The notes under the pieces were generated by a model. It was not told where the DNA came from. It was given only the letters and a program-made list of their open reading frames with translations, and did no database searches. Below, one piece after another: positions 11,681 through 50,488 of a stretch of DNA of 64,000 nt (the first letter of the stretch is position 1; each line of letters begins with the position of its first letter). The stretch comes from Mytilus edulis (taxonomy: Eukaryota), in the NCBI RefSeq assembly GCF_963676685.1, contig NC_092356.1, positions 35,774,001-35,838,000 of the forward strand, read 5' to 3'. Both the position numbers and the translations under genes were made by a program.

Positions 11681-12060
11681 TATAGATATAGGAAGATGTG
11701 GTGTGAGTGCCAATGAGACAACTCTCCATACAAATAACAATTTAAAAAGTAAACCATTATAGGTTAAAGTACGGCCTTCAACACGGAGCCTTGGCTCACA
11801 CCGAACAACAAGCTATAAAGGGCCCCAAAATTACTAGTGTAAAACCATTCAAACGGGAAAACCAACGGTCTAATCTATATAAACAAAACGAGAAACGAGA
11901 AACACGTATATATTACATAAACAAACGACAACTACTGTACATCAGATTCCTGACTTAGGACAGGTGCAAACATTTGCAGCAGGATTAAACGTTTTAATGG
12001 ATCCAAACCTTCTCCCTTTTTCTGAAACAACAGCATAACATCACAACAAAGAAAAAACAT
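11681..12060 (-). mobile_element. Family E short dispersed element (about 380 bp) carrying a twister motif
   Basis: AAGATGTGGT..GCCAATGAGACAACT end, also seen near 2170, 2368, 16873, 33490-33738 (inverted), 38626, 48578, 58186-58437 (inverted) and 58580. Confidence 0.75.
11942..12025 (-). ncRNA. Twister ribozyme-like motif, type-P5 permutation (repeat family E)
   Basis: Minus strand reads TCAGA aaaa GGGA GAAGG tttggatccattaaaacgtt T^AA TCCT GC TGCAAAtgTTTGCA CCTG TCCTAAGT CAGG aa TCTGA. P5, P2, P3, P4 and both pseudoknots pair; P1 is atypical. Confidence 0.75.
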
Positions 12061-12230
12061 AGATTGTTATTAAGGAATTATATTTCCGAAGGAATCAAAA
12101 CTAATTACATGTGTTTAAAGAAATCTAACTGACGTAATTATTTGATTTTTCATACAGAAGGGGCCAAACGGAAGGCGCTTTTTTAAATTATCTATTCACC
12201 TAGATAATCATGTACACCAGTTTTGTTTAA

Positions 12231-12631
12231 GGATGTACTTAGGTGAGGTTTTTGAATTTGTGTCAAATTTTCAGACTCCTTGATGTTTTTCCATACAAGA
12301 CAATGTAAAATATTTTGCCCCATAAAACCCATTTATGTTTTTCATATTAGACTTAATAGCTCATGAAAGGCCATTTACCAAAATTTGAGAAGATTCTTAA
12401 TTTTCTTTCTTTTGTTTTGAGATCCAAATAATACCAATGCAAATATAAGGTAAAAGTCCGAGTCAGCCTTTTTCCGCCATATTTTAAATCTCAAATATCT
12501 CGAAAAGGAGGTCCATGACCTGTCAATATTTTCAGCTTATCTTTATCCTTAATTGATGCTCTACCAGCTCATAGTATCAATTTTAATTTCTTAATTTCGT
12601 AATTGTTACCTAACCTCACCTAAGTACATCC
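12231..12631. mobile_element. MITE with 20-bp perfect TIRs and TTAA target duplication (Kolobok-like)
   Basis: TTAA GGATGTACTTAGGTGAGGTT ... AACCTCACCTAAGTACATCC TTAA. Confidence 0.85.
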
Positions 12632-13494
12632 TTAATTATGTGTTAACTATAGGCGGGTAGGTAGTATTTCCTGGCCCATAAGGGATAATGATAGCCATTT
12701 AAGGAATTTTCACCACTTTCTAACACTGGCAAACATTTACTCACACAGTTAACTGAAGTACTTTCATTATACTAGTACTAATCAGAAATGAGTTTTAATA
12801 CGTTTCATGGCCTTTTACTTTTTTTGCTATTTCTCAAAATCTTAGACTAGTGCTTTTATGTTTTTTTTTATCATGCAGTGAATACAAAAAATAAACAAAT
12901 CTCAATAAATCACTTTCACCTGTATGTAAAACTATTTCATATGATTCTACACTTCGTTCATCCCGGAAAGTATGTTCAGTTAGTACTGTATTTTTCGTCC
13001 AATCACACTGTTCACATACACTGACTTAATTAGGGTACACAAAAAAAAGAGCAACCTATGTTCCGGAATGCAAATACAACCGTGCTACCTTAACTAAGAC
13101 ATCACAAACTTGAAACCAGTCATGACACCTATGATGCATAGCCCTCTTACTTTGAATCATATTACAATAATGAATACAAGTCAGAACTTATTTCTCACCA
13201 ACAAAATATAAAAGATTAAACCCCTACCACAGCTGGTATATTTTCACTTTTTTCATCTTAACATTTCTCGCAAGAAGTGATCGAAACCCAAATATATGAT
13301 GTTTCAAATCAATACTTAAGTAAAACATGGTGATTTAGGAGGGATTATTGGAATGCCAACTCTATTTCTAGTTAATTCGACTGATAGAAACAGTGTATTT
13401 CCATATCTTTTATACGTGCACAATTAATTAGTTACGACATATCATACAATGACAGTAAATCCTATTTCTTTTCTGCTCTTTGAAGCGTTAAAAT

Positions 13495-15165
13495 ATGGAC
13501 GTAAATGATAAAAAAGATCTTTGCAGTCCATGCGAATTCAAAAGCAAGACAGAAACAGCTAGAAAATGGTGTACTGAATGTGAAGAGCCCCTTTGTATTA
13601 CCTGTTCTGAGAACCACAATGCAAACAGATATTTCAGGAACCATCATGTGATATCAGTAGAAGGTAACCAGTTGCTAGCATCACTACAGATACCTCTCAA
13701 CGAATACTGTGAAGTTCACGATAAGAAAAAGGACTTGTACTGTTCTTCACATGGAGAGATTATATGTTTGACATGTACGCAGAATACTCATGGAAAATGT
13801 GTGCCAGCTGCACGTTTGAGTGATGTCAGTAAGAACGCTAAAACTTCAACATTTGTCACAATGTTAGAATCAAATATAGCCGACGTCGTAGATCAATTAA
13901 GAGACATTATAAAAGATAGAGAAAACAATAAGGTAGAAATTGAAAAACAAAAAAATGAAATCCTTGAAGAAGTTAGAAGCTATAGAAAATGTATTAACGA
14001 TAAGCTAGACCAGGTAGAAAGTATAATTATTGAAGATTTAAATGGAAAATGCCAAACATTTAACCTGAAAATCGACAACATTGTTATGTTTCTTAACGAT
14101 CACCTGAAAAAGTTTGATGAAATACGAAAACAGATGGATACTTTGAAGGAATATGCGTCAGATACACAAACTTTTATCGGGGCAAAAGCTCTCGGAAAAA
14201 CATTGCATTACAATGAGTCTATGCTTACATCGGTTTTAGAGTTAATCCAAAACATTAACATAACTTTGGAGGTGAATCAAGATATATTCGTTACTTGCGC
14301 AGATATAAAGTCATTCGGGGATATTCGAGTAAACACACTAGATACCGGTTATTGTAATTTGCAGAAAAACAGAGGACAATGCCCCATTGACCACCAATTA
14401 AAACTATCCAAAGCGTTAGAAATCAAGATACCACAGGAATTTTTTTTTAGAAGTATCATATTAAGTTGCGTCATACTTCCGAACAAACAGATGATTTTTG
14501 TAGACTCACATGCTCGTAATAAACGATTAATAGTTCTAAATGAGGATGGAACTCCTAATCGCAATATTAAATTGACCGGTAGGCCATTTGATATCGCCGT
14601 GATTTGCAGTAACAAAATTGCAATTAGTTTCCCATGGTGTACTCGCAATAGAATCGGAATAATCGATTTGACAAATAACAAATCGGAGCCCGACATTGTT
14701 TTTAAAAACAAATGTTATGGTATTTCATACGATAAAGATAGATTGTTTGTCGTCGTCAAGACTGAAGGAATTTTGATAATGGACTTAATTGGAAAGGTAA
14801 GCGCATGCTTACCGATTGAAGGTGTGGGAATATTTTATGTCCATGTTAAAAATGAAAGACTTTACTGTTCTGACGAATGCAATGACACAGTACAGTGTTA
14901 TGATATGGAAGGGTATTCTATTTGGACATATAAAGATTCAAATTTAGTATCACCCAGGTCAATTTCATCAGAAGAAAACTTTATTTTAATAGCAGGATGC
15001 AAAACAAATAATGTTGTGTCCATTTATTTTAATGGAAGTTTTGCAAGCGTAATTTGTGACACAGATGACGGTATAATTAATCCAACAAGTATATATTTTG
15101 ACTCAGGCAATCTTTTAGTATGCAATAGTTCAAATGCAATGGCAATTTTATGTAAGAAAAGGTAA
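13495..15165 (+). CDS. RING-less TRIM-like protein (B-box1, B-box2, coiled coil, NHL-like beta-propeller), 556 aa, copy 1
   Basis: Intact ORF. B-box1 CSPC..WCTECEEPLCITCSENH..HHV; B-box2 CEVH..YCSSH..ICLTC..HGKC; heptad-rich middle; C-terminal blades (PFDIAV, CYGIS, PRSIS, PTSIY). Pyrimidine tract and AG acceptor end 9 nt before the ATG. Confidence 0.93.
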   Translation: MDVNDKKDLCSPCEFKSKTETARKWCTECEEPLCITCSENHNANRYFRNHHVISVEGNQLLASLQIPLNEYCEVHDKKKDLYCSSHGEIICLTCTQNTHGKCVPAARLSDVSKNAKTSTFVTMLESNIADVVDQLRDIIKDRENNKVEIEKQKNEILEEVRSYRKCINDKLDQVESIIIEDLNGKCQTFNLKIDNIVMFLNDHLKKFDEIRKQMDTLKEYASDTQTFIGAKALGKTLHYNESMLTSVLELIQNINITLEVNQDIFVTCADIKSFGDIRVNTLDTGYCNLQKNRGQCPIDHQLKLSKALEIKIPQEFFFRSIILSCVILPNKQMIFVDSHARNKRLIVLNEDGTPNRNIKLTGRPFDIAVICSNKIAISFPWCTRNRIGIIDLTNNKSEPDIVFKNKCYGISYDKDRLFVVVKTEGILIMDLIGKVSACLPIEGVGIFYVHVKNERLYCSDECNDTVQCYDMEGYSIWTYKDSNLVSPRSISSEENFILIAGCKTNNVVSIYFNGSFASVICDTDDGIINPTSIYFDSGNLLVCNSSNAMAILCKKR

Positions 15166-15479
15166 GATTCTTATTATTTATTCTGTTTTATTATTATAAT
15201 CTCCGACGTTTGTTTACAACATTTTTCGGATAAAATAAGATACTTTAATCGCCATAAATCAGGTTTAAAGACGCACATATCCGACCCTCTCTCCCTTTTG
15301 CCAGTCTATTTGAACAAAATCAGATTAAAAAGCTTTACATCGCTGGAGAGTGTTAAATCTTGTAAAGACGTTTTATATAAGTTAACATATTGCGCTCACA
15401 TCTATGTTTACACCCATACTTCATGTTTATTTTGGTTAACTTATGTCCAAATTTATTGTGTTTAACTAATCGCTGTCTA

Positions 15480-16872
15480 GTCCACATTAACACTATATCT
15501 CATGTTTACATTAACTTATTGTTGTCTCATCGACACTGTGTTTGGTCTACGTTTACACTATATCTTATGTTTACATTAACGTATTGTTGTCTCATCGACA
15601 CTGTGTTTGGTCCACGTTTACACTATATCTCATGTTTACATTAACTTATTGTTGTCTCATCGACACTGTGTTTGGTCCATGTTTACACTATATCTCATGT
15701 TTACATTCACTTATTGTTGTCTTCTCATCGACACTGTGTTTGGTCCACGTTTACACTATATCTTATGTTTACATTCACTTATTGTTGTCTCATCGACACT
15801 GTGTTTGGTCCACGTTTACACTATATCTCATGTTTACATTCACTTATTGTTGTCTCATCGACACTGTGTTTGGTCCACGTTTACACTATATCTCATGTTT
15901 ACATTCAATTATTGTTGTTTCATCGACACTGTGTTTGGTCCACGTTTACACTATATCTCATCTTTACATTCACTTATTGTTGTCTCATCGATACTGTGTT
16001 TGGTCCACGTTTACACTATATCTCATGTTTACATTCACTTATTGTTGTCTCATCGACACTGTGTTTGGTCCACGTTTACACTATATCTTATGTTTACATT
16101 AACTTATTGTTGTCTCATCGACACTGTGTTTGGTCTACGTTTACACTATATCTTGTGTTTACACTAACGTATTGTTGTTTCATCGACACTGTGTTTGGTC
16201 CACGTTTACACTATATCTCATGTTTACATTAACTTATTGTTGTCTCATCGACACTGTGTTTGGTCCACGTTTACACTATATCTCATCTTTACATTCACTT
16301 ATTGTTGTCTTCCCATCGACACTGTGTTTGGTCCACGTTTACACTATATCTTATGTTTACATTAACTTATTGTTGTCTCATCGACACTGTGTTTGGTCCA
16401 CGTTTACACTATATCTCATGTTTACATTCACTTATTGTTGTCTCATCGACACTGTGTTTGGTCCACGTTTACACTATATCTCATGTTTACATTCAATTAT
16501 TGTTGTTTCATCGACACTGTGTTTGGTCCACGTTTACACTATATCTCATCTTTACATTCACTTATTGTTGTCTCATCGACACTGTGTTTGGTCCACGTTT
16601 ACACTATATCTCATGTTTACATTCACTTATTGTTGTCTCATCGACACTGTGTTTGGTCCACGTTTACACTATATCTTATGTTTACATTAACGTATTGTTG
16701 TCTCATCGACACTGTGTTTGGTGCACGTTTACACTATATCTCATGTTTACATTCACTTATTGTTGTCTCATCGACACTGTGTTTGGTCCACGTTTACACT
16801 ATATCTCATGTTTACATTCACTTATTGTTGTCTCATCGACACTGTGTGGTCCACGTTTACACTATATCTCAT
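15480..16872. repeat. 65-bp tandem array, about 21 copies, with 588-bp higher-order structure
   Basis: Unit GTCCACGTTTACACTATATCTCATGTTTACATTCACTTATTGTTGTCTCATCGACACTGTGTTTG. 68-bp variants near 15720 and 16308. Confidence 0.97.
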
Positions 16873-17087
16873 AGATATAGGAAGATGTGGTGTGAGTTCC
16901 AATGAGGCAACTCTCCATCCAAAAAACAATTAATTAAAAAAGGTAAACCATTATAGGTCAATGTATGGCCTTCAACACGGAGTCTTGGCTCACACCGAAC
17001 AGCAAGCTATAAAGGGCCCCATAATTACTAGTGTAAAACCATTCAAACGGGAAAACCAACGGTCTAATCTATATAAAAAAACCGAGA
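16873..17087 (-). mobile_element. Truncated family E element inserted in the last satellite unit
   Basis: Matches 11683-11895 and is flanked by a TCAT duplication. Confidence 0.75.
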
Positions 17088-17299
17088 ATCATGTTTACAT
17101 CCAGGTCATGGTGCAAATGATGCTATTTTCCCATTACAATCAGTTATTTTTAAATATTTTGGTTTAAAGAAAAAAACTGTATTGTTGTTTTATAGATTAT
17201 AAAAGTGCATGTTGACAACTTGAATAGAAATATTTTATATTTAAACTTACAAAATGTGGTATGAGTGGTGAACTATTTTCAAGTATAAAATCTGTTTAT

Positions 17300-19094: not shown

Positions 19095-22000
19095 TCAATT
19101 CGCCAATAAAGGTTTAGATGCTGTAAATATTAGCAATATTTTCCATCAGAAATCTGTACAAAAATCTATACCCGATAACTTCAAAAATAAAGCTACACCT
19201 GTTATTTCTTATATTACAACAAGTCTATTGCATCCAAGATTTTCAACCACAAGATGTTTTTAGAGGCCTTTAACCTCAAGGATCGTGAAATCCAAACCTC
19301 CGGATTGCTCATGTGCATCGTCACAATACAATTATAGTCCAGCTGGTCATGTTATTACTGGTGACCTTGGCATCGTTATCAATGAACAGCTAAGAGAGTT
19401 GTTAGCCAAAGACTAAAATATAGAATTCCCCAGCCCATCAACTGGAAAAAGAACTGTAAGTTACTGATGGATGCAGTTGAGGACTATGCAAGAAAATGGG
19501 TAAAGCGCGAACCAGACAAACCAGAACTGCACACTTTGTCTGAATGGATCAAAGCTATTCGATCATGCATTCAGAAGCGCATTAAAAAACTACGATGTAC
19601 TATGAGCACAAGAGTTACTAACCCTTTCAATACTCCGGATGTTGTGGATGCTTTATCCGTTTTGCATGACAAATATGTCGTTGTTCCAGCAGATAAAGCC
19701 TCCAATAATATTGTCTTCATATGTAAAAACCATTATTCATGTTATTTGCAATGTCTCACAACAGAGCTTGGAATAAAGATAATTACTGGTAATCCTACAT
19801 ATTCTTTAACATCATTTACCAAGGACGAAATTTTACAAAATCACATTTTTTTTCCTTCTTTCTTTTGGTATCAATATCAAAGAAAACGATACATAGCTGG
19901 GTCATCAAAATGTTAGACTAAACATTTTTCTAAAGTACTGACTACTATTCTTTCTACAGTTAAAGATGGGCTACAAAAATATTGTGATGAGATATATTCT
20001 ACCAGTGGTGTTAACCAGATGTGGATTATCAAAAATTCGAAAGATCTACTGCTTAATCTTCGATCACAATCTTTGCAATTTTGCAGCAACATAAAGACTT
20101 TTGATTTTCTACGCTTTACACTACTATTCCCCATGCTCAGTTGAAAGATCGACTTCACCATCTCATTAAACAGAGCTTATTCTATTAAAATGGGAATCGT
20201 AGATACAAATTTCTTGTTTTGGGTTAACATAATTCATATTTTGTGAAGAACCACACGGAATCTTCCAGAAAATATACTGTAGATGATATTATCAAAATGC
20301 CGAACTTTTTGATCGACAATATATTTTTTTAGTTTGGAGGATTTATATTTCAACAGACAGTCGGTATTCCAATGGGTACTAATTGTGCACTCCTACTGGC
20401 CGATTTGTTTTTGTACTCGTATGAAACAGAATTCATTCAGAACCTTCCAAAAGACAAAAAGAAAAAGCACCTTGCGAAATTCATTTATTTTACTTTCCGA
20501 TATATTGATGATGTCCTATCATTGAATAACCCATATTTCAGCCAATACTTACATCTCATATATTCCAGTGAACTTGAAATTAAGGATACTACTGATACTA
20601 GAAGGACTGTTTCATACCTTGATCGTTTCCTCAATATTGACACAGATGGACGACTTCCCACGAAAATCTATGATAAACGGGACGATTTCAACTTCCCAAT
20701 TATCAATTTCCCTTTCTCAGCAGTAGCATACCCTCTGCCCCTTTGTATGGTGTTTACATATCTAAATTGATACGTTATTCTCGTGCATAGTCCCACTATA
20801 CGTACTTCATATACAAGAGTGTGCTCCTAACGCAAAAACTGCTCTAAACAGTTATGAGGAGGACAGATTAAAAATGACACTCGTAAATTTTACGGACAAC
20901 ATCACGAATTGGTTGATCCATACGATGTGTCTTTGTCCAAACTAACTAAGGACATTTTTACCACGTGTTAGATTGTGGTTTGTCATTACGTCGTCTGATC
21001 TTTTGATTCCCGAAAGTGACTTATTCCCGATTGTGACTGTTTTGCTGAGTGTGAATTCGCATTGCTATAAGACGTGTCACGGTACTTTTCTATCCCAAAT
21101 TCATGTATTTTTTTTTTTATGTTATTTTTGTTATTCTCATCGGATTTTGTCAAATGTCTTAACGTTTGTAGTTGTAAATCTTATTATTTTCTGTTATATT
21201 CGTGTGTTATGGTAAAGATAATTAATCACCCGGTTCATTTGTTAGATTTTAGTTTGGGTCAACGAAATTTATACGATGGGTTTGGTTTACAGTTTGATTC
21301 GGAAGAAGCACCAACATGGCTAGAAGATGCAGTTGATTGTCTGATTACTACCACAGTTTGATATTGATTAGTATTGTGGTTTTTGTTGTTGTTGATAAAT
21401 GTTATATCGGTGTTGCAAATCTAATCTTGAATTCTGTCCTATTTCTATCTTGCTTTTTGGGAAGTTTTTTTTAGAAATTCGAATGTGACGTCGATTTGTG
21501 CGTTGATGGCTTTGGCTAACTCGGCTGTGTATTTTTGTGTGCTGGTTTGGGTTGTTTTATGTGATGTGTCCGTTTTTATTCTGTAGTTAGTCGCCACTTC
21601 GGTTTTATCATGTATATCTATTATCTAGTCATTTTATAAAATTTACTGTTTGCAAAAGCGTGAGTTGTTCTAAATAATAAGGATGTTCTTGTCCCGGGCA
21701 GAGGATCCTGGCCGTATTGGGCACAACTTTTTCGGAACTTTTGGTCCTCAGTGCTCTTCAACTTGTACTTATTTTGGCTTTCGAACTTTTTTCATCTGAG
21801 CATCACTGGTTAGTCTTGTGTGGACGAAGCGCGCGTCTGGCGTATTAAATTTTAAACCTTGTACCTTTTGTTAGCTATTATTCGTGTGTTTCTCTGTCCT
21901 ATATCTTCTCCCATTTATTTGTATTGTAGTCCTGTTATGCAATGTTGTCATTTTAATGTTATATTTAACATTGCCATAAAAGCGGGTGGTTTGGCATGCC

Positions 22001-22245
22001 ACAAAAACAGGTTCAGACCACCATTTTTTCCTTAAAATGTCCTGTACCAAGTCAGAAAAATGGCCATTGTTATATCATAGTTTGTGTCTGTGTTTGTTAC
22101 ATTCTAATGTTGTGTTTCTGTTGTGTCGTAGTTCTCCTCTTATATTTGATGTGTTTCCCGCAGTTTTAGTTTGTAACCCGGATTTGTTTTTGTCTCAATC
22201 GATTTATGAATTTCGAACAGCGGTATACTACTGTTGCCTTTATTT
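19095..22245 (+). mobile_element. Decayed Naiad-type Penelope-like retroelement (5'-truncated) with a long 3' region
   Basis: Frameshifted ORF about 19095-20970: [26 protein letters not shown] (CxC at 19306-19314), VPADKASNN, RYIAGSSKC, MGTNCA.LLADLFLY, FRYIDD, KIYDKRDDF. No C-terminal GIY-YIG. The 3' region ends GCCTTTATTT. Joining RT and tail into one element is inferred from adjacency and from shared sequence with 39697..40760. Confidence 0.78.
21972..22065 (+). ncRNA. Degenerate type-P5 twister motif (family A)
   Basis: P5 GCCAT/ATGGC, P3 CATTTT/AAAATG and the loop CCTG TACCAAGT CAG are present. GAGG is changed to GTGG and TAA to CAG. Confidence 0.55.
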
Positions 22246-22483
22246 ATCTGCGTTTTTTTTGTTAAATGTATAGTGATGTGCGAAATTTTAGTGTCTTGGA
22301 CTATTGTATATTTTCTTGCTTTTTTACACATGTTCAATGGGGTATTTATCTTTCTAAAAAAAAATAACATTAAATAATTCAAAAAGTTTATTAAGTTGAT
22401 TTCCAAAATGATATCACTTCCTTTAAAAATGACGATTTCTGAAATTCGGGTTTCGTTTTGAAAGTTAGACCTAGCATATCCTT

Positions 22484-25329: not shown

Positions 25330-28300
25330 AAGTAATAGATGATTACCTTGATGGAGGGTTGCTGTGTACAATAATAATGGATCAGTCACCGTACTTAATA
25401 TAATAAACTTTTGATTCCAAAAGTTCTTTGCAGGGGTAGTTAAGACACTGCATATTCATCAGCTCAAAGTGTAATACTATTGATAGGAATAGAGGGTTAT
25501 TGCATGTTTATTGATAAATATAAATGTACCGAGGAAGAGACATTTATACTACTCTAGGTTGCGAGCTCAGTATATATCCTACGAGGTATCATATTCACAA
25601 ATATTCGTTATCCGTATTACTCCCTCTTGAGCTTCTAATAAGTTTAATTTATTTATGTTTATTCTGTTCTGTCAAACCATAAATTTCATCGTGCGTCAAA
25701 GCGTATTGTATATAAAGGTAAAAATTTAGAATAATTGTCAATGATAATTCTCCACCAAAAACCAACTGAAAAAGAAGTTAACAACTATAGGTCACTGTAT
25801 AATCTACAACAGTGAGCAAAACCAATTAAAGTCATCGAGAAATGTTGACCAGTTCAAAAGAGAAAATTAGCGTCTGGATTTGTGTACAAAATATTGAAAG
25901 ATAAATATATATGATATACAGCAACAAACGAAAACTACTGAATTGACTCGGTGGAAATGTTAACAAAAGTCTTCGAATTGGCAATCGTTTTGTTTATTTT
26001 TTGCTGCTGTTTAAAGTATGCATTGAAAGACTTTTGTGTGACTTCCATCGTTTATCACTTTTCATGTCCGTCTGTTCTGTCGCCTATTTATTAAATTTGT
26101 GTTAACTTTTGCTGATTTGAATGGCTTCACATTTGATCAAAACTTTACAGTAAATCGAATTTTTCTACTCTAGGGATAATTCTGTTTGCTTATACTTTAA
26201 ATGGTCTAATATGTTAAACAGACTTCTATTGTTTTAGCATGCGAACGAGTGCAACTTCTTGTTTTATGTGCTACAGATTTCTCTACGTATAGCTGTTTTT
26301 TTAAGATTGATGAAATGTGAAATGACGATTCACTTTGAATAATAGTCAATGCATTAATCTATTTAATTTATCAATTTAAAATGGCAGTATTATGTGTTAC
26401 GCATATCCTCTTAATTTGCCATTTGTCCATCTGTTCTCAATATAGGTTTTTTACATCTTTATCTTCATCCATTTAGCTTGCCTTTAGCGACAGCATATCA
26501 AAGTTCAAAAAGGTTCTTATCACTGTTACTATAGATGATAAGAATTTAAACTAATCAATGAAATTGTATTTTCTTATAAAACGAAAATTTTCTACATTTG
26601 AAAATGCTTGTACCAAGTCAGGAATATGAAAGTTGTTCTCCTTTTCTTATTTGACTTTGCCATTTGATTATGGTCGTTCCGCTTGAATTTTCCTCGGAGT
26701 TCAGTATTTTTGTGATTTTATTTTTTTCTATTTTAACATTTAGTTTTGTTGCAATGTGTAAATATTATAATTTATCAATTGAATGATGAGGATAAACTTT
26801 TAAATGCTAGCATATATCATTTTTAAAGCTACAACATCGACGCGGTCATCAACTGTTGAACACACGAAAAAACAGCCAAATTTAATGATAGAATTTAAAA
26901 CACATAGGTTACGCTTACAGTATAGTCTTATCTAAGTTAGCGGAACAGTTTTATCTTCAAAACTACATTGCTATCCAAATCTTACAGGGATGTAATCATC
27001 TTCAAGAAGATAATTTATCTGCTCTTCACCGATTTTCAAATCGTATATAATCTGAAGTGTAAAGGAATGTATGATAAAGCTTTTTATGGAGTTATTATAT
27101 TCAAATATGTTACATGGATAGATGTTCCTAGACACGAAGTACAATATAATGACAATTAGGTAATTATTTATACATGTTAAACGCTTAAATGGTGTATATA
27201 ATTGTAAAGAGTAGTTTTCTAAATATTTACAATTATTAATGCTCAGTTCAAATACACAGTTCTTTTTCTAGCAAGAACTTAAAGATCAAAATACGATGTA
27301 AATCTCAAACATTCGTATATATCTTTCGACTTGCAGACAGTCTCAAAGATCATTGGATAGGAATGCAAGTTTTTGACATGTTAAAAACAATATTTCTCCA
27401 AGTTAGTATCGAAAACCGCTCATAAACCGAAAGCAACAATAATTTACCATCCGAAAACTACTCGAGGGAATCACCAATTCATGCCAATTGTTTTCTTGAT
27501 TTGTAGTTCTGTCAGTTTCCTTTTTCGTACAGATAATTAATTGATTGTCACAAATGCTTGCATATTGTTCACGATTTCATTCTGGTGATGTTAGGATGAC
27601 TTGACGGATTGAAAAAATAAATGAATTCATAACGTGTAATTACGAACAATTTACAAAAAGATGCGTATACTTTACACATTCTTATGGACTGTTTGCGATT
27701 TAGTAAATGGTACAAGCGTGGGGAAAACGTAAGACTTGTAAATACTCGTAACTAACACGAAACCATTCAAAATAACACATTGACAGGTCGTGATGAGCAC
27801 TTTGAAGCTTCGATGAATCGTTTTTAACAAGAGGTCTTGAAACTAAGGTTACTACATACGGAAATAATATCGGCGAATTAGAGTATAAGTTTAGAAAATG
27901 TATAGTAAATAATACTTTCTACTTAATTTAGATGAAAATGGTATTAAATTATGCCAAAAAAAAAGAAAGGTAACAGCACGATATTTATTAAACTCAATAG
28001 ATGGTACAGTGTGGTATACGGCAGCTTATAAAATAGATTTTACCCGTTATGTAACACAGAAATGCAAGATGAACTCCATTTCGTAACTCTCGAATGAACA
28101 TTCTAAATGTAATTCTGATATTTTGTCTAGTTTCATTTTTATGAATAATAATAAAAAAAAAATTTCATATGAGAACAAATATGACAAACTGATGATTTTT
28201 GTAAATAATACGAGTAAAATGTACAATAACAGGAACAACATTAACAATAGTGGAAAAAATGTGTAAAGTATGGTTTTATATGGATACTTTTTGATTCTTT

Positions 28301-28440: not shown

Positions 28441-28690
28441 AAAAGTAAAATCACAAAAATACTGAACTTAGAGGAAAATCAAATTCGGAAATTCCATAAT
28501 CACATGGCAAAATCAAATAACAAAACACATCAAAAACGAATGGACAATAACTGTCATATTCCTGACTTGGTACAGGCATTTTCAAATGTAGAAAATGGTG
28601 GATTAAACCTGGTTTTATAGCGCTAACCCTCTCACTTTGATGACAGTCTCATCAAATTCCGTTATATTTACATTGATGCGTTAACTAAAA
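28441..28690 (-). mobile_element. Family D short dispersed element carrying a twister motif
   Basis: AAAGTAAAATCACAAAAATACTGAACT end. Partial copies at 8080-8228, 26588-26722 (inverted), 47955-48137 (inverted) and 52480. Confidence 0.72.
28550..28647 (-). ncRNA. Twister ribozyme-like motif, type P5 (repeat family D)
   Basis: Minus strand reads ACTGTCAT caaa GTGA GAGGG ttagcgctataaaaccaggtt T^AA TCC AC CATTTTctacatttgAAAATG CCTG TACCAAGT CAGG aat ATGACAGT. Confidence 0.7.
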
Positions 28691-35087: not shown

Positions 35088-36758
35088 ATGGATATTAATG
35101 ACAAACAAGATCTTTGCAGTCCATGTGAATACCAAAGCAAGACAACACTAGCTACACAATGGTGCATCGACTGTAAAGAGCCTCTTTGTGTTAGCTGCTA
35201 CGGGAACCACAATGCACACAGATATTCAAGGAACCATCATGTAATATCAATAGAAAGCAACAAAATGCTACAGTCCTTAAAGATACCTCTAAATGAGTAT
35301 TGTGAAGCACATGATCAAGAAAAAGACTTGTACTGTTCCTTCCATAACGAGATTATATGTCTGACATGCACACAGACTACTCACGGGAAATGTGTACCAG
35401 CTGTCCGTTTGAGTGAAGTCAGTAAGAGCGCCAAAACGTCGACGTTCGTCTCAATGTTAGAAACGAGTTTAGTTGAGGTTGTCGATAAATTAAGTGTAAT
35501 CATAAGAGAAAGAGAAACTAACAAAGCAAAAATTGAAAAACAAAAAACTCAAATATTCGAAACAGTTAAACATTTTAGAAAATGTATAAACGATAAGCTA
35601 GACCAGGTAGAAAATGTTATACTTGAAGATTTAAATGCAAACTTGGAAAAACTTAACCTGCAAATCGACAACAATGTTCATTTTCTTAACGATCACCTAA
35701 ATGAGTTTGATGAAATACGAAAAAAGATTGATATATTAAAGGATAATGCGTCAGATACGCAAACTTTTATAGGTGTAAGAGCTCTCGAAAAAGTATTTCA
35801 TTACAAAGAGGTTAGGCTTACATCATTTTTAGAGTTAATCCAAAACCTCAACATTGAGTTTGAGGTGAATAAAGATATATTTGTTGCGTGCGCGGATATC
35901 AGGTCATTCGGTGATATTCGAGTGCAAACATTAGATACCGGTTATTTTAATTTCCTGAAAAACAGAGGACAATACCCTATTAACCGTCAATTAAAACTAT
36001 CCAAAGCATTAGAAATCAAGATACCCCAGGAATCTTTTTTTAGAAGTATCATACTAAGTTGCGTCATACTTCCGAACAAACAGATGATTTGTGTAGACTC
36101 ACATGCTCGTAATAAACGATTGATAGCTTTTAATGAGGATGGAAGTCATGATCGCAATATCAACTTGACCAGTAAACCATTTGATATCGCTGTGATTGAT
36201 GATAACAAAATTGCCCTGAGTTTTCCATGGAGTGCTCGCAAAAGAATAGGAATAATAAATATGAGCAATTCAAAATTGGATCCCGACATTTTGTTAAAAA
36301 ACAAATGTTATGGTATTTCATACGATAAAGAGAGATTGTTTGTCGTCGTCAAGACTGAAGGGATTTTGATAATGGACTTGTGTGGACAGGTAAGCGCATG
36401 TTTACCGATTGAAGGACAGGAAATATTCTATGTTCACGTAAAAAATGACAGAATTTATTGTTCTGACGAATGCAATGACACAGTACAGTGTTATGATATG
36501 GAAGGGTGTTCTATTTGGACATTTAAAGATTCCAATTTAGAATCACCAAGATCAATTTCAGCAGACGATAAATTTATTTTAATAGCAGGATGCAAGACAA
36601 ATAATGTTGTGTCAGTTTATTTGGATGGAAGTTTGGCCAGAGTTATTTGTGACTCGGACGACGGGATAAATAATCCAACAAGTATATATTTTGATTCACA
36701 AAATCTTTTAGTATGCAATTCTTCAAATGCACAGGCATTTTTGTACAAAGTAAATTAG
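35088..36758 (+). CDS. RING-less TRIM-like B-box/coiled-coil/beta-propeller protein, 556 aa, copy 2
   Basis: Intact ORF, colinear with and the same length as 13495..15165. Same Cys/His pattern and same acceptor 9 nt before the ATG. Confidence 0.93.
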   Translation: MDINDKQDLCSPCEYQSKTTLATQWCIDCKEPLCVSCYGNHNAHRYSRNHHVISIESNKMLQSLKIPLNEYCEAHDQEKDLYCSFHNEIICLTCTQTTHGKCVPAVRLSEVSKSAKTSTFVSMLETSLVEVVDKLSVIIRERETNKAKIEKQKTQIFETVKHFRKCINDKLDQVENVILEDLNANLEKLNLQIDNNVHFLNDHLNEFDEIRKKIDILKDNASDTQTFIGVRALEKVFHYKEVRLTSFLELIQNLNIEFEVNKDIFVACADIRSFGDIRVQTLDTGYFNFLKNRGQYPINRQLKLSKALEIKIPQESFFRSIILSCVILPNKQMICVDSHARNKRLIAFNEDGSHDRNINLTSKPFDIAVIDDNKIALSFPWSARKRIGIINMSNSKLDPDILLKNKCYGISYDKERLFVVVKTEGILIMDLCGQVSACLPIEGQEIFYVHVKNDRIYCSDECNDTVQCYDMEGCSIWTFKDSNLESPRSISADDKFILIAGCKTNNVVSVYLDGSLARVICDSDDGINNPTSIYFDSQNLLVCNSSNAQAFLYKVN

Positions 36759-39076: not shown

Positions 39077-39696
39077 ATTCAACAGATAGAAAACAACGAC
39101 AGCCACGAAATAACAGCCTTATGAAAAGGAACCTGTTCAAATAGAATCTGATGGGTTGAAAAATATATCAGATCTAATTCCCATCCTGGATGATCCAGAA
39201 CTTGCTTTGAAGAAACAATCATGTCAAAATTGTATGTATTTATCTAGCATTTATAACAAATTATATTTTAAAGTAATAAGATTCTCTCAAAAAGAGGGTG
39301 GTTCATTCATCTTTACTCTTTTCAAAAGTCTAACAGTCCAATTAAGTGCTCATTATTATTTTACAATATCATCTATTTGCAACAATAGTTACACAATCAG
39401 ATGCATAAACCTATTCAAGGGGTTGAATATCATCGTGAAAAGACATTGTTTTACTCTTTTTTTCAATTATCTCATTAAGATGAAATTAACTTCAATCTTT
39501 TATATTTTAAAACGATTTAAGAAGAGTAAAATGAATCACTTGTTTCAAGATGCAGAATACAAAGCTGCTGATGTTATCTCATTATTCATTTTCAAAAAGA
39601 TAATTGCACGAGATGAGATAAGCCACGTACCTCATTTACGCGCCTACACGCTTTTCATTATGCATGTTATAAATGAGACTATATAACGGTGACAAA

Positions 39697-40760
39697 TAAA
39701 GGCAACAGTAGTATACCGCTGTTCAAAATTCATAAATTCATGGACAAAAAACAAAATCGGGGTAACAAACTAAAACTGAGGAAAACGCATTAATATAAGA
39801 GGAGAAAGACGACACAACATTAAAATGTAACACACACAGAAACGGACTAAGCATTAGACAAAATCCTATGAGAATAACAACTATAACATCAAAACCAAAT
39901 ACATGAATTTTTGAGAGATAAGTACCATGACACCTCTTGTAGTAATGTGAATTCACACTCAAAAATAAGAGAAAACAAACGACACAACGGAAACACAACA
40001 TTAAAATGTAACACACACAGAAACGAACTATAATATAACAATGGCCATATTCCTGACTTGGTACAGGACATTTTTAAGGAAAAAATGGTGGGTTAAACCT
40101 GTTTTTGTGGCATGCCAAACCTAACTCTTTTATGGCCATGTGAAATATAACATTAAAATGACAACACAACATTACAAGACTACAATATAAGTAAATAGGA
40201 GAACACAATTGACAAAGAAACACACGAATAATAGCCAACAAAAGGCATCAAGTTTAAAAATTTTAATACGCCAGAAGGGCATTTTGTCCACACAAGACTT
40301 ACTAGTGACGCCAAGATACAAAAGTTTGACAGCCGAAACAAGTACAAAGTTGAACAGCATCAAGGACTAAAAGTTCAAAAAAGTTGTGCCAAAAACGGCC
40401 AGGGTTTTCTTTTAGGTACCAGAACATCCCTATTATTTAGAATAATTTATACTTTAGCAAACAGTAAATTTTATAAAATGACTATACAAAAGATGTACAT
40501 GATAAAACTGAAGTATTAGCTAATTACAGGAAGCAACCGAAATACATTACATAACCCGACAAAATGCAGCACATCCAAATAAGTTTAAACCTCATCGCCA
40601 AGTGACGTCATATTAGAAATTGTAAAAAATGACAACAAAAACAAAATGACGTCTCATTTGAATTTGTAAAACAGATCATCAAAAAATGAAAAAGACGTCA
40701 CATTGGAATGAATAAGATAGAATTAGGATTGATTTAAGATTATATTTGAACTAAATACTG
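39697..40760 (-). mobile_element. Non-autonomous family-A element (retrozyme-like segment, twister relic, Naiad-like tail)
   Basis: Homologous to about 21480-22245 and 21050-21170. Boundaries defined by the empty paralogous site at 50986-51005. Confidence 0.75.
40041..40139 (-). ncRNA. Degenerate type-P5 twister motif (family A)
   Basis: 9-bp P5 ATGGCCATA/TATGGCCAT, TAA CCC ACC, P3 and CCTG TACCAAGT CAGG are intact. The putative general-base G is changed to T. Confidence 0.6.
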
Positions 40761-41613: not shown

Positions 41614-43562
41614 TTAATAACACTTCTCTACGAAATGTGTTATGGAAAGGTCCGAAATATCGTGAGCCTAAATCCATCAATTGGAAATACAACTTTAAAA
41701 TTTTGATGGATTCAGTTGAGGATTATGCCAGACAATGGGCTAAGCGCGAGAAGGAAGACGTAGACACTCTTTCCGAATGGATTAAGGCAGTGAGGTCGTT
41801 GATACAAATTAGAATTGAGAAACTGAATGGGTCTATCAATGTCCATGCTATGTCAATCTTTAAAGACCCAAATGTTGCAAAACACCTATCCTACCTCCAT
41901 GGCAAATATGTTGTTGTCCCCGCAGATAAAGCCCCAAACAACATCGTTTTTGTATGTAAAACTCATTACATTAACTGCTTGATAAACGAATTAGGTATTG
42001 ACAATTCACTTGGAAACTCAACATATACCCTCACGACACTTACCAAAGAGGAAATCCTGGATAATCATAGGTCTGTTCTGTGTTCCTTTGGAATTTCAAC
42101 CAAAGATGAAGAACTGGAACTGCCATCACTGTATTGGATACCTAAACTACATAAGTGTCCTTACAAACAACGGTATATTGCTGGGTCTTCCAAGTGCTCC
42201 ACGAAACCTCTTTCTAAATTATTAACATCTATTTTATCAGCAATCAAAGACGGGCTTCCAAGTTATTGTGAAACTGCCTATTCTAAAGGGGGCGTGAATC
42301 AGATGTGGATACTTAAAAATTCCAAAGATCTTTTAGAGTACATACAATCTAACTCTCTTTCATCTTGTAACAGTATTAAAACATTTGACTTTTCTACTCT
42401 GTACACTAGTATTCCACATTCCAAACTAAAAGACAAATTGAAAGAGTTGGTATTGCTTTGCTTCGTAAAAAAGAATGGCCAACGTAGATACAGGTATCTT
42501 GTCTTAGGGAGGGATAAATCCTACTTTGTAAAGGATCACTCTGATTCGAACAAAAAATCCTCTGAAACTGATATTATCAAGATGCTTGATTTCTTGATTG
42601 ACAACATATTTGTTACGTTCGGAGGACGTGTTTTTCAACAGACTGTCGGCATTCCAATGGGAACAAACTGTGCCCCTCTACTTGCCGACTTGTTTCTTTA
42701 TTATTATGAGGCTGACTTCATGTAGGAACTTCTTAGGAAGAAAGATAAGAAGTTAGCAATATCCTTTAACTCTACTTTTCGCTATATAGATGATGTTCTT
42801 TCACTAAATAATTCAAAATTTGGTGACTATGTGGAACGCATCTATCCAATTGAGCTAGAGATAAAGGATACTACAGATACAGTTAAGTCGGCCTCATATC
42901 TTGACTTACATCTAGAAATCGACAATGAGGGTCGGTTGAAAACAAAACTTTACGACAAAAGATATGATTTCAGCTTTCCAATTGTGAACTTTCCATTTCC
43001 ATGATTTCTAAGTGGCAACATTCCAGCAGCACCTGCTTACGGGGTATATGTCTCCCAATTGATACGATATTCCCGTGCTTGCATTTCCTATCATGAATTT
43101 CTTGATAGAGGGTTGCTGCTCACAAGGAAGCTATTGAACCAAGAGTTCCAAATGGTGAAGTTGAAATCATCCCTTCGTAAATTTTACGGACGCCATCACG
43201 AGTTGGTTGACCGATATGGAATAACCGTTTCACAAATGATATCGGATATGTTCCTTACGTCGTAACTACAATCCCCTTAACTTTCATGAATGTGACCTAC
43301 CAAATTAGACTATTTCCCGGATTTGTTATCACATAAGCAACACGACGGGTGCCGCATGTGGAGCAGGATCTGCTTACCCTTCCGGAGCACCTGAGATCAC
43401 CCCTAGTTTTTTGGTGGGGTTCGTGTTGTTTATTCTTTAGTTTTCTATGTTGTGTCGTGTGTGCTGTTGTTTGTTTGCCTTTTTCTTTTTTGCCATGGCG
43501 TTGTCAGTTTGTTTTAGATTTATGAGTTTGACTGTCCCTTTGGTATCTTTCGTTCCTCTTTT
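41614..43562 (+). mobile_element. Naiad-type Penelope-like retroelement, 5'-truncated, near-intact RT
   Basis: One frame 41637-43265 with only TAG at 42723 and TGA at 43002. Motifs KGPKYRE, LYWIPKLHK, TFDFSTLYT, QTVGIPMGTNCAP, FRYIDD, LRKFYGRH. About 300-nt 3' tail ending CCTCTTTT. Confidence 0.85.
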
Positions 43563-45226: not shown

Positions 45227-45896
45227 AACAAAATTGTACTAAAGAATTGAAATAACGTCATACTAGAATCAGGTTTTTGAAAAACCAAAACGATTACTTA
45301 GATTTCTGTATACGTACTCTTTCCTATAAGAAATTAGCTACACTATACACCCAATCGAAAATGTTTTTAATAACACAGTTTTATTCTGTTTTGATTCGCC
45401 CCGCCTTGACATTTTTCACAATGTTTTACGCTTTATGCCTGCCTAATTTGAAATTTCATCAGGCAAAAGGACGGATTCCACATGTGATCTGCTTACTCAT
45501 GCAGAGCATCTGATATTACTACCGGTAAATAAAGGGGTTTGTGTTTTTATAATGTTGTTTGTCTGCGGGTCGTTTATCGTATTTTACAATGACACTGTCA
45601 GTTCGCTTTAGGGTTTAATGAGTTTGATTGTCCGTTTGTATCTTTCGTCTTTCGTTTTCTTTTCAACTAAAATTGGAGTGATAATTTGATGCGAAATTGA
45701 AATTGTTTAATGACTTATAGACAATGAATTGTTTTTTTCGTCTGGAGGTTTTGGAGAAGAAGAATCACCTGGTTTTGTAGTGTTCATGTATATTTTATTT
45801 CTACGTCTGGCAAAAATGTAAATAAGAATTCAATAAGTCATTTAAAAAATGACGGTAGCTTTAGCTATTTTATGCTCTTTATTATAGAGGTGAAAT

Positions 45897-47538
45897 ATGG
45901 ATGTTAATGACGAAAATGATCTTTGCAGTCCATGTAAATTTAAAGGAAAGCAAAAAGAAGCTACAAAATGGTGTACTGAATATGATGAGACTCTTTGTAC
46001 TACCTGCCAAGAGAATCTCAACGCAAACATATCTTTTAAAGAACATCATGTGATACCAGTAGTTGGCAAACACATGCTAAAATCACTTCATATACCTCTT
46101 ACTGAATACTGTGAGGATCATGAAAAAGAAAAGGATTTGTATTGTTCCTCACACAAAGAGATTATATGTCTGACATGCTTACAGACTTGTGAGACAGCTG
46201 TCCGTTTGCGTGAAGTCTAAAGAATGCTAAGAGTTCATCATTCGTGTCAGTGTTAGAAAACGATGTAATTGTCGTCATGGAAGAATTACACGATATTATA
46301 TAAGATCGAGAAAACAATAAACTACAACTCGAAAAACAAAGGACTGAAATCCTGGATACTGTTAAAGATATTAGAAAATGCATTAATGCTCAGCTTGACC
46401 AGGTAGAAAATAAAATTACTGAGGATTGAACAGCACAATTTGAAAAATATAACTTGGATATCGATAAGAATGTTAAGCTCCTAACCGATCATTTGAATGG
46501 GATTAAAGAAATACAAAAAAAAAATGGGAACTTTAAAAGAATATGCATCAGATTCACAAACGTTTATAGGCGCAAGAGAACTCCGAACAAGTAATGGTAA
46601 CATCATTTTTAAAGAAAATCAAAAGCGTTAACATTGATATTAAGAAAAATGAAGACATATTTGTTACATGCGGGAAAATAAAGTCATTCGGGGATATTCA
46701 AGTTACTGCATTAGATACCGGTTATTGTATTTTCCAGAAGATCAAAGGACAATACCCCATAGGCATTGAACCTAAAATCATGTCTAAATTTAGTAAAGCT
46801 TTGGAAATCAAAATACCACAGAAATGCCGTATGGATAAATGTGCTATACTTCCAAATAAACAGATGATTTTTGTCGATACAAATAATAAAAAGTTGATAA
46901 TTGTTAATGAGGACGGTACTCACAATCGCAATATAAACATGACCAATAGTCCATTTGATATCGCAGTGATTGGCAATGAAAAAATTGCCATGAGTTTTCC
47001 TTTGAGTACTCGCAAAAGAATCGAAATAATCAGTACAACTAATTATCAATCGGTGCATGAAATCCTTTTCAAAAAGAAATGTTATGGTATCTAATACAAT
47101 AATGGTAATCTGTTTGTTATTGTCAAGAGTAAAGGGATCTTCGTAATGGACTTGTGTGGGGAGTTAATGTTTTCTTTGCCGATTGAAGGTAAAGGTTTAT
47201 TAAATATCCACGTGAAAAATGACAGACTTTATTGTTCTGATGAAAACACAGTACAGTGTTATGATATGGAAGGGAGTTCTATGTGGACATTCAAGGATTC
47301 GAATTTAAGATCCCCAAGGTCAATTTCTTCAAACCAAAATTTCATTTTTATAGCAGGGTACAAATCAAATAATATTGTATCCGCTAGCATAAACGGAAAG
47401 ACTGTCAAAGTAATTTGTGACAAACACAACGGTATTAGTGATCCGACAAGTGTATATTTTGCTACACATCATCTTTTAATGTGCAATGGTAAAAATTCTA
47501 AGGCATTTTTATACAAGGAAAACTTACAAACTAATTAA
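45897..47538 (+). pseudogene. TRIM-like B-box/beta-propeller pseudogene, copy 3
   Basis: ORF pieces 45897-46220, 46594-47094 and 47146-47538 align in order to copies 1 and 2. Frameshift near 46218, TGA near 46428, slipped A-run near 46515, TAA at 47092. B-box ligands lost (C to Y, H to L, HGK deleted). Confidence 0.88.
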
Positions 47539-49875
47539 TTGTTCTATATTTTATTATTTTCTGTATATATAACTATTGATTTGATAATATATATTTTGTT
47601 AAATAAGTTGTAAATAAAAAGAATATCAGTAATCACAAACACTACCGCTTATTATATTTATTATTTTGCTTCAGGCCAAACTCATATTTCCTTTGTGCCC
47701 ACAAGATATTGACGCATACTCTTCAATAACTCAATAACACGATGTACGTGAATTGAAACATAAATGCACATGAAAATGATTGAAGTTTCTGTTCTGACGT
47801 TTTCGTAAGAAAAAGTGGTTGCCGATGAAATAACTATACAACACAGTCAAAATAACGTTAATTTAATTAATAAAACATGAAGTACAACGCCCAGAACCAA
47901 AACTGTACACTCAGCTAAACAGATCCCGACTCAAAATAATTTGAATGCATAACAGCTAGCTATTAATCATGTTTAATCCACCCTTTTCTACAAAAAAAGA
48001 CTGTAACAAGTCAGGAATGTGACAGTGGTTATCCATTCGTTTGATGTTTAATGTGCTTGAGCTTTTAATTTTGCTATTTTTTTTAGGGACTAACCGTTTG
48101 AATAATCCTTTCAGTCCGGTATTTTTGTGATTTTACCTCAGACCACTAAATCAAAGTACGTCATGTCCAGATGCTTACGAATAAGGGTCCTTTGAATATT
48201 ACAGTTTTAGTTAATTAATCCTACATTTAATTGCAGTATAAAATGTCTCAGTCATTAATATATATCGTGGGTGTTCAAAGCACCATTATTTCTTGTTGGG
48301 TGTTTCTATCAAGCATTTTGGAAACTTACGGTTACATGGTTTCTCAAGCTTGTACACAGAAAAAAGAGGTGAACATTTGATTGGTTGATTTCCAGTGATT
48401 GTTATTATCTTATATGTTATGAATTGTGATGTGAAATTTTGATTGCAGTATAAGACAGGATAAAACTTTACTCATTCCATTCATTTTTTTTTAAATTTTC
48501 ACACAAAGATAGATTCTGCATAGACGTATGGGGGTAAACAATTGGCGTATTACACCTGAAATAGAACAAACAAATAAGAAGAGAAGTGGTATGAGTGCAA
48601 AAAGTCACAATGTATGCAAAAAACACACAATTAAAATTACAAGTACAGCCTTCAACACAGAGCCTGCATCAATCGGAACAGATGGCTATAAAGGGCTCAA
48701 AATGACTTGCGAAAAACAACCCAAACAGGAAAATCAACTGTCTTGTGTGTGTTACATTTTAATGTTGTGTCGTTGTTCTCCTCTAATATTTAATGCGTTT
48801 CCCTCAGTTTTAGTTTGTTTCCCCGATTTTGTTTTTTGTCCATAGATTTATGAGTTTTGAACAGCGGTATACTACTGTTGTCTTTATTTGTCTTTATAAA
48901 TAAAACCAAACGAGAAACAAGTCACCTTTACTAACAAACATACAAAAATACTAGACTAGGGTATCAATCAGAACATATTCAGTGGATGAAGCATAGAGAC
49001 GTCTTAAAAACAGTACCAGAAAAACATGACCTTGAATTTAATTTGAACTTTTAATTTTTTTAAATGTTGTAATATTGATTGCAGTATTACAAAATGTTTA
49101 ACGAGATCCATGAACTTTTGTATCAGTTTTTAAAAAGTGTCAATTCAACCGGCCTGAAAATTATCGATATTCAAAATTCATAAAAGACTGGTATTCATGT
49201 ATTTATGGCAACAACCGTGCCAGTTGCTGATTTTTTTAGTTTTTTTCAGTTTTTTTTTCTATATCGTAATTGACTTTTCTTCACGAGATTGTTGAAAATG
49301 AAATATTACCTTGTTGATTAATGTACAGCTTGACTGTTAATACCTTAACATATGGTATTTAAACGTGTTCGATGTAGAACTTTTTAAATGTTTGTACTAA
49401 ACAAAAACGAATACCAAACAATGGAACAGTGCTGTAACTGCTGCTCCTCATGGAGAAAAATGGAAAACACAACAAACTCACTGCGAGTTCAAAACGGTCT
49501 TTAACATCAGTTTTAGAAAAATTCAATGCAAAATGTCGAATTTTAAAAAGAAACTTTAGCAAAAACATCAAAGCCTTTGCGATACAAATATTTAAGAAAG
49601 CAACTTTTAGCCCGGAATATACAGTATACAGAATAAACATAGAATTCCGACAAACGTGTTAAAGAGATAATTGCATCAGCAAAACTAAAGAGCAGAAAAC
49701 AGCAGAAGGCCACCAATGGGTCTTCAACTAAGCTAGCCAATCTCGCTTCCGAAGGCTGTCTCCAGCTTTTCCCTAAACAAAAAAGTTCAAGGAAAATAGA
49801 CGTGACACCCAACTCCAAAATGATATATAAACCAAAATAATAATAAAAAACCCAACATACAAGACTAACAAAGAC

Positions 49876-50488
49876 TAGAGGTTCCTGACTTGTGACAAGC
49901 ACAATAATGCGAAGGGGTTATACATATGTTGAGATCTCAAACATTATTTAGTTATCTTGGTGTAATCAGGGGTGTACAGAATTTTACACCGTTGTTGAAA
50001 ATTCAACAACGGTGTAAAATTCCGTACACCCCTCATTACACCAAGATAACGAATGTATTTCTTATGAACAATTCCTTTAGTCATTTTGAAACCAGGACGT
50101 AAAATTGTAAAAATGGTAATGAAAAACTTCCAGCGTAATATTATTTCAATGTCCATGTTGCTGCACATTGTCAAATACTTTTTACTTTATGTTTGGAAAA
50201 ATTCTGAAAATTTTTGTGTTCTTTTGAGTTTACAAAAAAAAAATAAAAAAAATATTTAAAAAAAATTTTTTTTTTTTTTTTAGCATTTTCTTCTTATTAT
50301 TTTTTTTCTATATTTTTTGAAAATTAAATTTTTTATTTTTTTTTGGCAAAATTTAATTTTTTTAAAAATTTTGGCAAAATTTTATTTATCCCCGGGTGAA
50401 CAAGGGTGGGGTGCTATTTACACCGGGGTAGTCAACCAATCAGATTGCAGTATTTTTGCTGCATAAGAAATAATCTCTTATACCTCTA
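49876..50488 (-). ncRNA. Degenerate type-P5 twister motif (family C) split by a hairpin element
   Basis: Minus 49943-49876 reads tgagatctca..TAA CCCC..GCA..GC TTG TCACAAGT CAGG aa CCTCTA. The matching P5 strand TAGAGG lies at 50483-50488, beyond the 49944-50473 insertion. Confidence 0.45.
49944..50473. mobile_element. Long-hairpin non-autonomous element
   Basis: 100-bp palindrome 49951-50050 (49-bp arms, 2 mismatches), 11-bp inverted repeat 50056-50066/50462-50472, CCAATC at 50436. Confidence 0.65.

Follow-up and report, generated by a model that had tools for sequence, protein, structure and literature searches.

A twister-type RNA fold, probably self-cleaving, in the 3' untranslated regions and pseudo-LTRs of Naiad Penelope-like elements

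How does one RNA-like module come to lie in four otherwise different repeat families? The question is raised by a stretch of 64,000 nucleotides of the Mytilus edulis genome (contig NC_092356.1, positions 35,774,001 to 35,838,000; hereafter the window), in which an initial annotation had described families E, D, A and C as four unrelated non-autonomous repeats that share a covarying twister scaffold and are mobilised in trans by the reverse transcriptase (RT) of Naiads, a clade of Penelope-like elements (PLEs). Hammerhead ribozymes are reportedly found in the pseudo-long terminal repeats (pseudo-LTRs, pLTRs) of canonical PLEs, a description said to go back to Cervera and de la Pena in 2014, with dimeric variants attributed to Lunse and colleagues in 2016. 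Naiads were described as lacking canonical hammerheads, as the annotation had noted and as the original description confirms (PMC8557442). The reading favoured here, to which I assign a probability of roughly 0.8, is that the module is a circularly permuted (type-P5) twister-class fold with an additional helix, P3, that it is built into the 3' untranslated region (UTR) or pLTR of many Naiad-clade PLEs, where it is predicted to cleave, and that E, D, A and C are truncated tails of four Naiad lineages.

The window was searched for the 18-nt P4/L4 core with at most three mismatches allowed, using 100 shuffled sequences as a control. Eight matches were found in 64 kb, at 8193, 11947, 22041, 26607, 28559, 40050, 48000 and 49882, against a mean of 0.03 in the shuffles, none of which reached eight; these are the sites at which the annotation had placed the module. 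The module is about 90–100 nt long and has the order and the core nucleotides of a type-P5 twister, plus the extra P3. Its ribozyme-like strand is the complement of the strand quoted in the annotation and, as had been claimed, it is the strand that bears the 3' end of the element. A covariance model, R1, was built from six canonical-looking modules, with the pairs of P5, P2, P3, P4 and the first of the two palindromes considered below, the pseudoknots being excluded. The D, A and C copies were left out of its building; R1 recovers E, both copies of A, D, C and one partial D module in the window.

The most canonical module of the window is that of E, at 11938-12028 on the minus strand (101 bits with R1; predicted cut U11987^A11986). 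The D module, at 28549-28647 (-), scores 42 bits and has its predicted cut at U28606^A28605; the A module at 40040-40139 (-) scores 43.7 bits (predicted cut U40095^A40094), and a decayed A copy at 21970-22068 (+), whose site reads C-A-G and not U/C-A-A, scores 30.5 bits. The Naiad-C tail, at 49689-49952 (-), holds the 3' two-thirds of a C-type twister (49873-49952; 30.8 bits), the 5' part being set apart by an insertion that leaves a remnant of the 5' strand of P5 at about 50484-50493; the annotation had rightly taken this copy as split, and its 5' half, P2 included, cannot be judged. The other core matches lie in D-type tails, two of which are truncated within twister P3, at 8079-8228 (-) and 26587-26724 (+) (the latter scoring 20.7 bits with R1 at 26571-26633 (+)), while the third, at 47959-48136 (+), begins a few nucleotides upstream of the predicted cleavage site. 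The insertion that splits the C-type twister (49953-50480) has at its edge a hairpin of 96 nt (49953-50048) that is almost perfect and gives a spurious Tombus_IRE match on both strands; beyond it lies low-complexity sequence rich in A/T.

As annotated, P5 differs from family to family yet pairs in each (TCAGA/TCTGA, ACTGTCAT/ATGACAGT, ATGGCCATA/TATGGCCAT and TAGAGG/CCTCTA), and the pseudoknot between L2 and L4 reads GC/GU in E and, in both D and A, AC/GU. The further claim that P2 and P3 remain paired in E, D and A stands for P3 in all of them and for P2 in E, a clean helix of 4 bp (UCCU/GGGA); P2 in D and A has 3 bp and one bulged or mismatched base, as in the imperfect UCC/G(U)GA of D.

Covariation was assessed on an alignment of 29 rows (28 distinct sequences) with 26 pairs in the full structure, shuffled rows and slid partners serving as controls. 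Paired cells amounted to 93%, versus 61% in the shuffled and 37-42% in the slid controls, and the covariation score was 0.805, versus 0.20 after shuffling (0 of 500 shuffles reached the observed value) and 0.06-0.09 after sliding, the nested helices being counted on an alignment fitted to the model and biased towards its structure. Double-sided changes occur in 22 of the 26 pairs. Pairing per helix was 93.8% for P5, 92.9% for P3, 96-100% for P4 and 81% for P2, with compensatory changes in each: P4 occurs as CCU/AGG, GCU/AGC, GCA/UGC and ACC/GGU, and P2 as CCCC/GGGG, ACAC/GUGU, UCCU/GGGA and GCCC/GGGC. The six pairs that lie outside the model (three of pseudoknot T1, two of pseudoknot T2 and the centre of the palindrome) were paired in 93.6% of cells, versus 70% after shuffling, with a covariation score of 0.575 versus 0.168, a value reached by 0 of 500 shuffles.

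Both pseudoknots contain double changes. T1, which joins L4 with L1, is 90.8% paired, its outer pair being GC in 8 cases, GU in 7, UA in 7 and AU in 2, and its inner pair GC in 19 and AU in 3. T2, which joins L4 with L2, is 94.4% paired and occurs as AU (12), CG (7), GU (4) and UG (1), so that the combinations of the L4 base with the L2 base facing it are U-A, G-C, U-G and G-U. Where L4 faces the G-A-G-G-G loop, C-G has become U-A in E and L096, and C-G has become A-U or U-A in A, old D, L125 and L096. All of these changes, like those in P4 and P2, are of the sort that a twister fold demands, and the variable core positions are the pseudoknot partners. Intact copies keep the A-A of the cleavage site, G,U,.,C,.,A,A,G,.,C in L4 and G-A-.-G-. 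in L1, the conserved G-A of the GAGGG loop among them, and nucleotide N-1, which precedes the cut, is U or C. Minimum free energy folds of single sequences give P5, P3, P4 and mostly P2; RNAalifold applied to a plain MAFFT alignment finds P5 and P4 and misses P2 and P3, the D and A rows being displaced by one base in that alignment. The twister-type scaffold that the annotation had proposed is therefore real and covarying, both pseudoknots included.

The association with Naiads was examined on 80 Naiad loci from metagenome contigs, fetched by two RT peptide patterns alone. R1 gave 25 matches at E <= 0.003, all on the strand of the open reading frame (ORF), which bears out the claimed tie to Naiad PLEs. 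In twenty-three cases the module follows the end of the RT match at a distance of 56-1050 nt; the remaining two (L065 and L121) lie in upstream copies. Among loci having at least 700 nt of downstream sequence, 19 of 39 carry the module; a more sensitive model, R2, adds only one match, which is cut by a contig end at the expected place. In the RT tree, loci with the module are scattered across the majority of clades. Several clades whose loci have ample flanking sequence lack both the module and any Rfam ribozyme, and in the lineage of the window's RT fragment at 41625-43247 (with L066, L073, L092 and L140) the tails are without a twister or other Rfam ribozyme, one copy having 2.9 kb of downstream sequence. 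In loci L103, L111, L112, L113, L117, L122, L123, L128, L130 and L135, SECIS_1 matches just under threshold (27-32 bits; gathering score 35) lie between the end of the ORF and the twister, and agree with the report by Craig et al. 2021 of Naiads that encode selenoproteins.

What, then, are the four families? The genome searched comprises 1.37 Gb in 14 large contigs with about 30% GC. A D query gave thousands of matches with a common sharp 3' end and graded 5' stops at 249, 260, 275 ... 1200 bp and beyond; the D copies therefore form a 5'-truncation series. Traced upstream, D leads to a 4181-bp element (L059:2967-7147), of which the Naiad-D tail of the window, at 28442-28689 (-), corresponds to the last 249 bp (4.2-kb Naiad-D element). 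The element has a 1053-aa ORF (L059:3058-6216) with an N-terminal GIY-YIG domain (residues 179-269, E 7e-7), a C-D-C (CxC) motif, P-A-D-K-A and P-K-L-H-K motifs and a C-terminal RT with YIDD. This is the Naiad architecture, a single ORF with GIY-YIG, CxC linker and PLE-type RT, as described by Craig et al. 2021 (PMC8557442). The element begins and ends with the same 117 bp, and such upstream partial repeats, of 117 bp in L059, 188 bp in L060 and 322 bp in L061, are pseudo-LTRs. L061 has two modules 4110 bp apart, one on each side of the ORF. Full-length Naiads thus carry the module in both the upstream and the downstream pLTR, a point that the annotation had proposed to check.

The other families are accounted for in the same way. 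E, at 11678-12064 (-), is the 5'-truncated, 3'-terminal ~385 bp of a Naiad, with 97% identity to L126:4119-4505, L126 being a complete Naiad, on a metagenome contig at the start of which the last 62 bp of the element are repeated. A discrete non-autonomous E family of 385 bp was considered and ruled out: the sharp 5' edge is no more than the end of the window's own copy, and L126, a full element, ends with the 385 bp. Own-genome matches at 99% identity stop at window position 11677. Family A is represented by a pLTR/3' UTR fragment at 39688-40547 (-), 85% identical to L065:556-1405 and present genome-wide at 92-94% identity, and by a second 3' UTR fragment at 21596-22248 (+), which lies 3' of a Naiad RT fragment of the A lineage at 19096-20953 (+) (tblastn identity to the Naiad-D protein 42-48%; grouping with L065 in the RT tree). 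Within the window, about 1 kb separates this RT from the A module downstream of it; the module also occurs in the upstream pLTR of L065. The RT fragment at 41625-43247 (+), with 59% identity to Naiad-D, belongs to another lineage. Family C matches the tails of Naiads L128-L130 (74% identity to L128:3378-3626). The RT regions of the four lineages have about 40-60% identity to the Naiad-D RT. On these matches D, E, A and C are assigned as 5'-truncated 3' tails (3' UTR or pseudo-LTR) of four autonomous Naiad lineages, and the ribozyme-like module is therefore taken to be part of those elements' own 3' UTR or pLTR. The claim of four unrelated non-autonomous families mobilised in trans does not survive this mapping.

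Comparison with Rfam places the module in the twister clan at low scores. At the gathering level no family was found in the window, and at the E-value level the near-threshold matches in the window were two type I hammerheads only, at 10456-10499 and 10811-10854 (-); in gathering and E-value scans of the whole window and of 17+16 loci, no twister was above threshold. The E copy scanned alone gave Twister-P5 at 17.8 bits, with the core GAAGG / UAA / GC / GUCCUAAGUC, and D scanned alone gave twister-P1 at 19.3 bits (gathering 67.2). The best copy, L128, gave Twister-P5 at 23.4 bits (E 0.0025; gathering 37.6), its low score being put down chiefly to P3, which the model lacks, and to the unusual P1 region. 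The three twister-clan matches align the core in the right order, GAGGG ... UAA-P2-GC ... P4 with the loop GUCCCAAG.C, and the D and E alignments read GA(A/G)GG, some 20 nt, U-A-A, P2, G-C, an inserted hairpin, and P4 closing a G-U-.-C-.-A-A-G-.-C loop.

The P1 region is occupied by two palindromes. The first is perfect, central pair included, and 6-10 nt long in 100% of sequences, with at least a dozen different sequences; its central pair is AU in 10, CG in 8, GC in 7 and UA in 2, hence 100% paired. The second lies immediately upstream of the predicted cut, its last nucleotide being N-1 or N-2. When it is scored per sequence, its arms measure 4 nt or more in 18 of the 24 distinct sequences, versus 3.7% of shuffles; by fixed columns it is out of register. 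A P1-like GGUU/AACC stem is possible, its bases being invariant. A palindrome with no loop cannot form a hairpin, which suggests pairing between two copies. RNAcofold homodimers pair the palindromes in trans, with a gain of -7 to -18 kcal/mol that overlaps the shuffled controls (mean -8 to -10). One speculative extension, which I regard as possible rather than probable, is that Naiad twisters are obligate pair-acting ribozymes: the palindromes would pair only with a second copy, in the other pLTR or in another RNA, and this would license the predicted cleavage only on tandem or paired templates and release a ligatable unit-length RNA. If so, Naiad twisters would parallel the dimeric hammerheads of canonical PLEs, and pair action would provide a mechanism by which partial-tandem insertions, a defining feature of PLEs, could arise.

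According to the favoured reading, a twister built into the Naiad 3' UTR and pLTR, the RNA would cut itself in the U/C-A-A loop, at the bond joining N-1 (U or C) to the first A, and a transcript crossing two pLTR copies would be trimmed to unit length. Such trimming has also been proposed as the function of the hammerhead of canonical PLEs. The unit RNA, or a ligated circle or tandem of it, would then be the template, which would explain the partial upstream tandem copy in insertions. The fold, its covariation, its place 3' of the RT on the ORF strand and its presence in both pLTRs of full copies are direct observations.

A number of points nevertheless count against this reading. Self-cleavage at the predicted site is what I infer from sequence. 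After a cut within the 3' UTR, the ORF would no longer be joined to the 3' end of the element, so that a processing role needs tandem or circular (two-copy) templates; this paradox is common to the hammerheads of other PLEs. Beside the cleavage site there is no ordinary P1 hairpin, the two self-complementary segments standing in its place. The second pair of P2 is unpaired in 12 of 23 cells, and in the abundant D and A lineages P2 is a bulged helix of 3 bp. No copy attains the Rfam gathering score (17.8-23.4 bits with Twister-P5 versus 37.6). About half of the Naiad loci with enough flank show no detectable module, which is therefore not universal in the clade. Finally, the count of nested helices on a model-fitted alignment favours the modelled structure, a bias of which the pseudoknot pairs are free.

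Several of these points lend themselves to another explanation, namely that the fold derives from a twister that no longer cuts and is now a structured 3' UTR element, for example an RT handle in target-primed reverse transcription or an RNA dimerisation site. The canonical P1 is missing, P2 is weakened in the most successful lineages, D and A, the two conserved palindromes point to pairing between RNAs, an element would seem to be harmed by a cut in its 3' UTR, and every copy is under the Rfam gathering threshold. However, the variable positions compensate in both pseudoknots, and the A-A of the cleavage site and the G-A of the GAGGG loop are fixed in intact copies, the pattern to be expected from selection on the catalytic fold and more than a binding hairpin would need; moreover, twisters without P1 are reported to cleave, if inefficiently (PMC8501958). 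A non-cutting fold is accordingly judged unlikely.

The explanation initially proposed, that four unrelated twister retrozymes borrow the Naiad RT and spread through tandem or circular RNA, could draw on the fact that short tail copies far outnumber full elements. It could also draw on three full-length model matches exactly 1009 bp apart on one strand (G000:C4:69224296-69226409), by which head-to-tail units with one twister each may exist, and on a 67-nt tandem array with a P4/L4-like hairpin. This array (L047/L040/L053; G000:C9, ~83577400-83587300) scores 22 bits per unit with R1 and adjoins a Naiad-D insertion; its unit does not parse as a complete twister. Since all families of the window map to the 3' ends of autonomous Naiads, the D copies being a continuous 5'-truncation series and the E edge the end of a single copy, the retrozyme explanation is very doubtful. 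No tandem or circular form of E, D, A or C was seen within the window. Almost no weight is left for the module being the twister-variant 5' head of an RTE/Nimb-type long interspersed element (LINE) or of an LP-SINE (SINE, short interspersed element), in the manner of the 5' twisters of Perere-3. Twister variants do occur at the 5' ends of RTE elements (PMC8501958; PMC7761336), and a LINE-derived head of ~70 bp is common to mollusc SINEs (PMC4758252), but the module lies 100-300 nt from the 3' end of its element, downstream of a PLE ORF, and its copies are truncated from the other side. By position, the LP-SINE/RTE head was ruled out for these copies.

Hammerheads occur in the vicinity as well. 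At 10422-11142 (-) lie two 355-bp units of a hammerhead-bearing repeat (type I, 33 bits; gathering 34). Elsewhere in the genome this unit is arrayed in tandem, and it is therefore a retrozyme-like element. The Naiad-A pLTR contains a stretch (window 40259-40514; L065:604-859) about 75% identical to this repeat, roughly 170 nt upstream of the twister, with a hammerhead relic at ~40260-40310. The core of the relic is mutated, to CUGGUGAG and GACGAGG in L065 and to CUAGUAAG and GACAAAAU in the window. The presence of a hammerhead relic and a twister in one pLTR hints that the mussel retrozyme and the Naiad-A tails may share ancestry. The window also holds two 556-aa ORFs with B-box zinc fingers, at 13495-15165 and 35088-36758 (+), whose C-terminal parts have 87% DNA identity over 750 bp; these are likely to be TRIM-like host genes, paralogous to each other.

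How does the module compare with known systems? It resembles the type-P5 twister (RF02684, clan CL00120; Roth et al. 2014) in its order, P5-AAA-P2-GAGGG-[P1 region]-U^AA-P2-GC-P4 (loop GUCCCAAGC)-P5, in its two pseudoknots and in the predicted cut; unlike the Rfam P5 model, it has an extra P3, palindromes in place of the P1 hairpin, and L4 and L2/L1 bases that are changed in compensating pairs. With the hammerheads of canonical PLEs it shares the character of a small, predicted self-cleaving motif in the pLTR/3' UTR, with upstream and downstream tandem copies and palindromes that suggest paired action, whereas the ribozyme class is another one and the host clade is Naiad, with its N-terminal endonuclease. 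The twister variants of the RTE element Perere-3 of Schistosoma mansoni (PMC8501958) are likewise twister-class motifs, borne by a retrotransposon at very high copy number in an invertebrate, but they are of type P1 and, placed 5'-terminally in a non-LTR element, remove the RNA upstream of them, whereas the Naiad modules are of type P5 with P3 and lie in a PLE 3' UTR/pLTR. As in the non-autonomous, hammerhead-bearing retrozymes (PMC4918200, PMC7229834), two motifs flank the unit in full-length tandems and would give a unit-length ligatable RNA; unlike them, the families of the window are fragments of autonomous ORF-bearing elements and not non-autonomous tandem units.

Twisters are known in animals, where ties to retrotransposons have been described only at the 5' ends of RTE elements (PMC8501958; PMC7761336). 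Within the library searched, no publication linked a twister with Naiads, and the papers since 2021 that mention both twister and Penelope appear, by title and abstract, not to connect the two. What is new, judged from the sequences, is a known ribozyme class, predicted to be active, in a new host element and with a modified P1. PLEs are defined partly by their pLTR hammerheads, and Naiads, which are dominant in bivalve and other invertebrate genomes, are the reported exception. If a different self-cleaving class indeed occupies the same place, PLEs would need a ribozyme there, not specifically a hammerhead, and the role of the ribozyme in PLE replication would become testable by comparison. 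If the favoured reading is true, current Rfam thresholds would miss a large natural lineage of twisters, and the twister would be among the most abundant ribozyme motifs of an animal genome, a first look giving a rough 4x10^5 candidates in this one.

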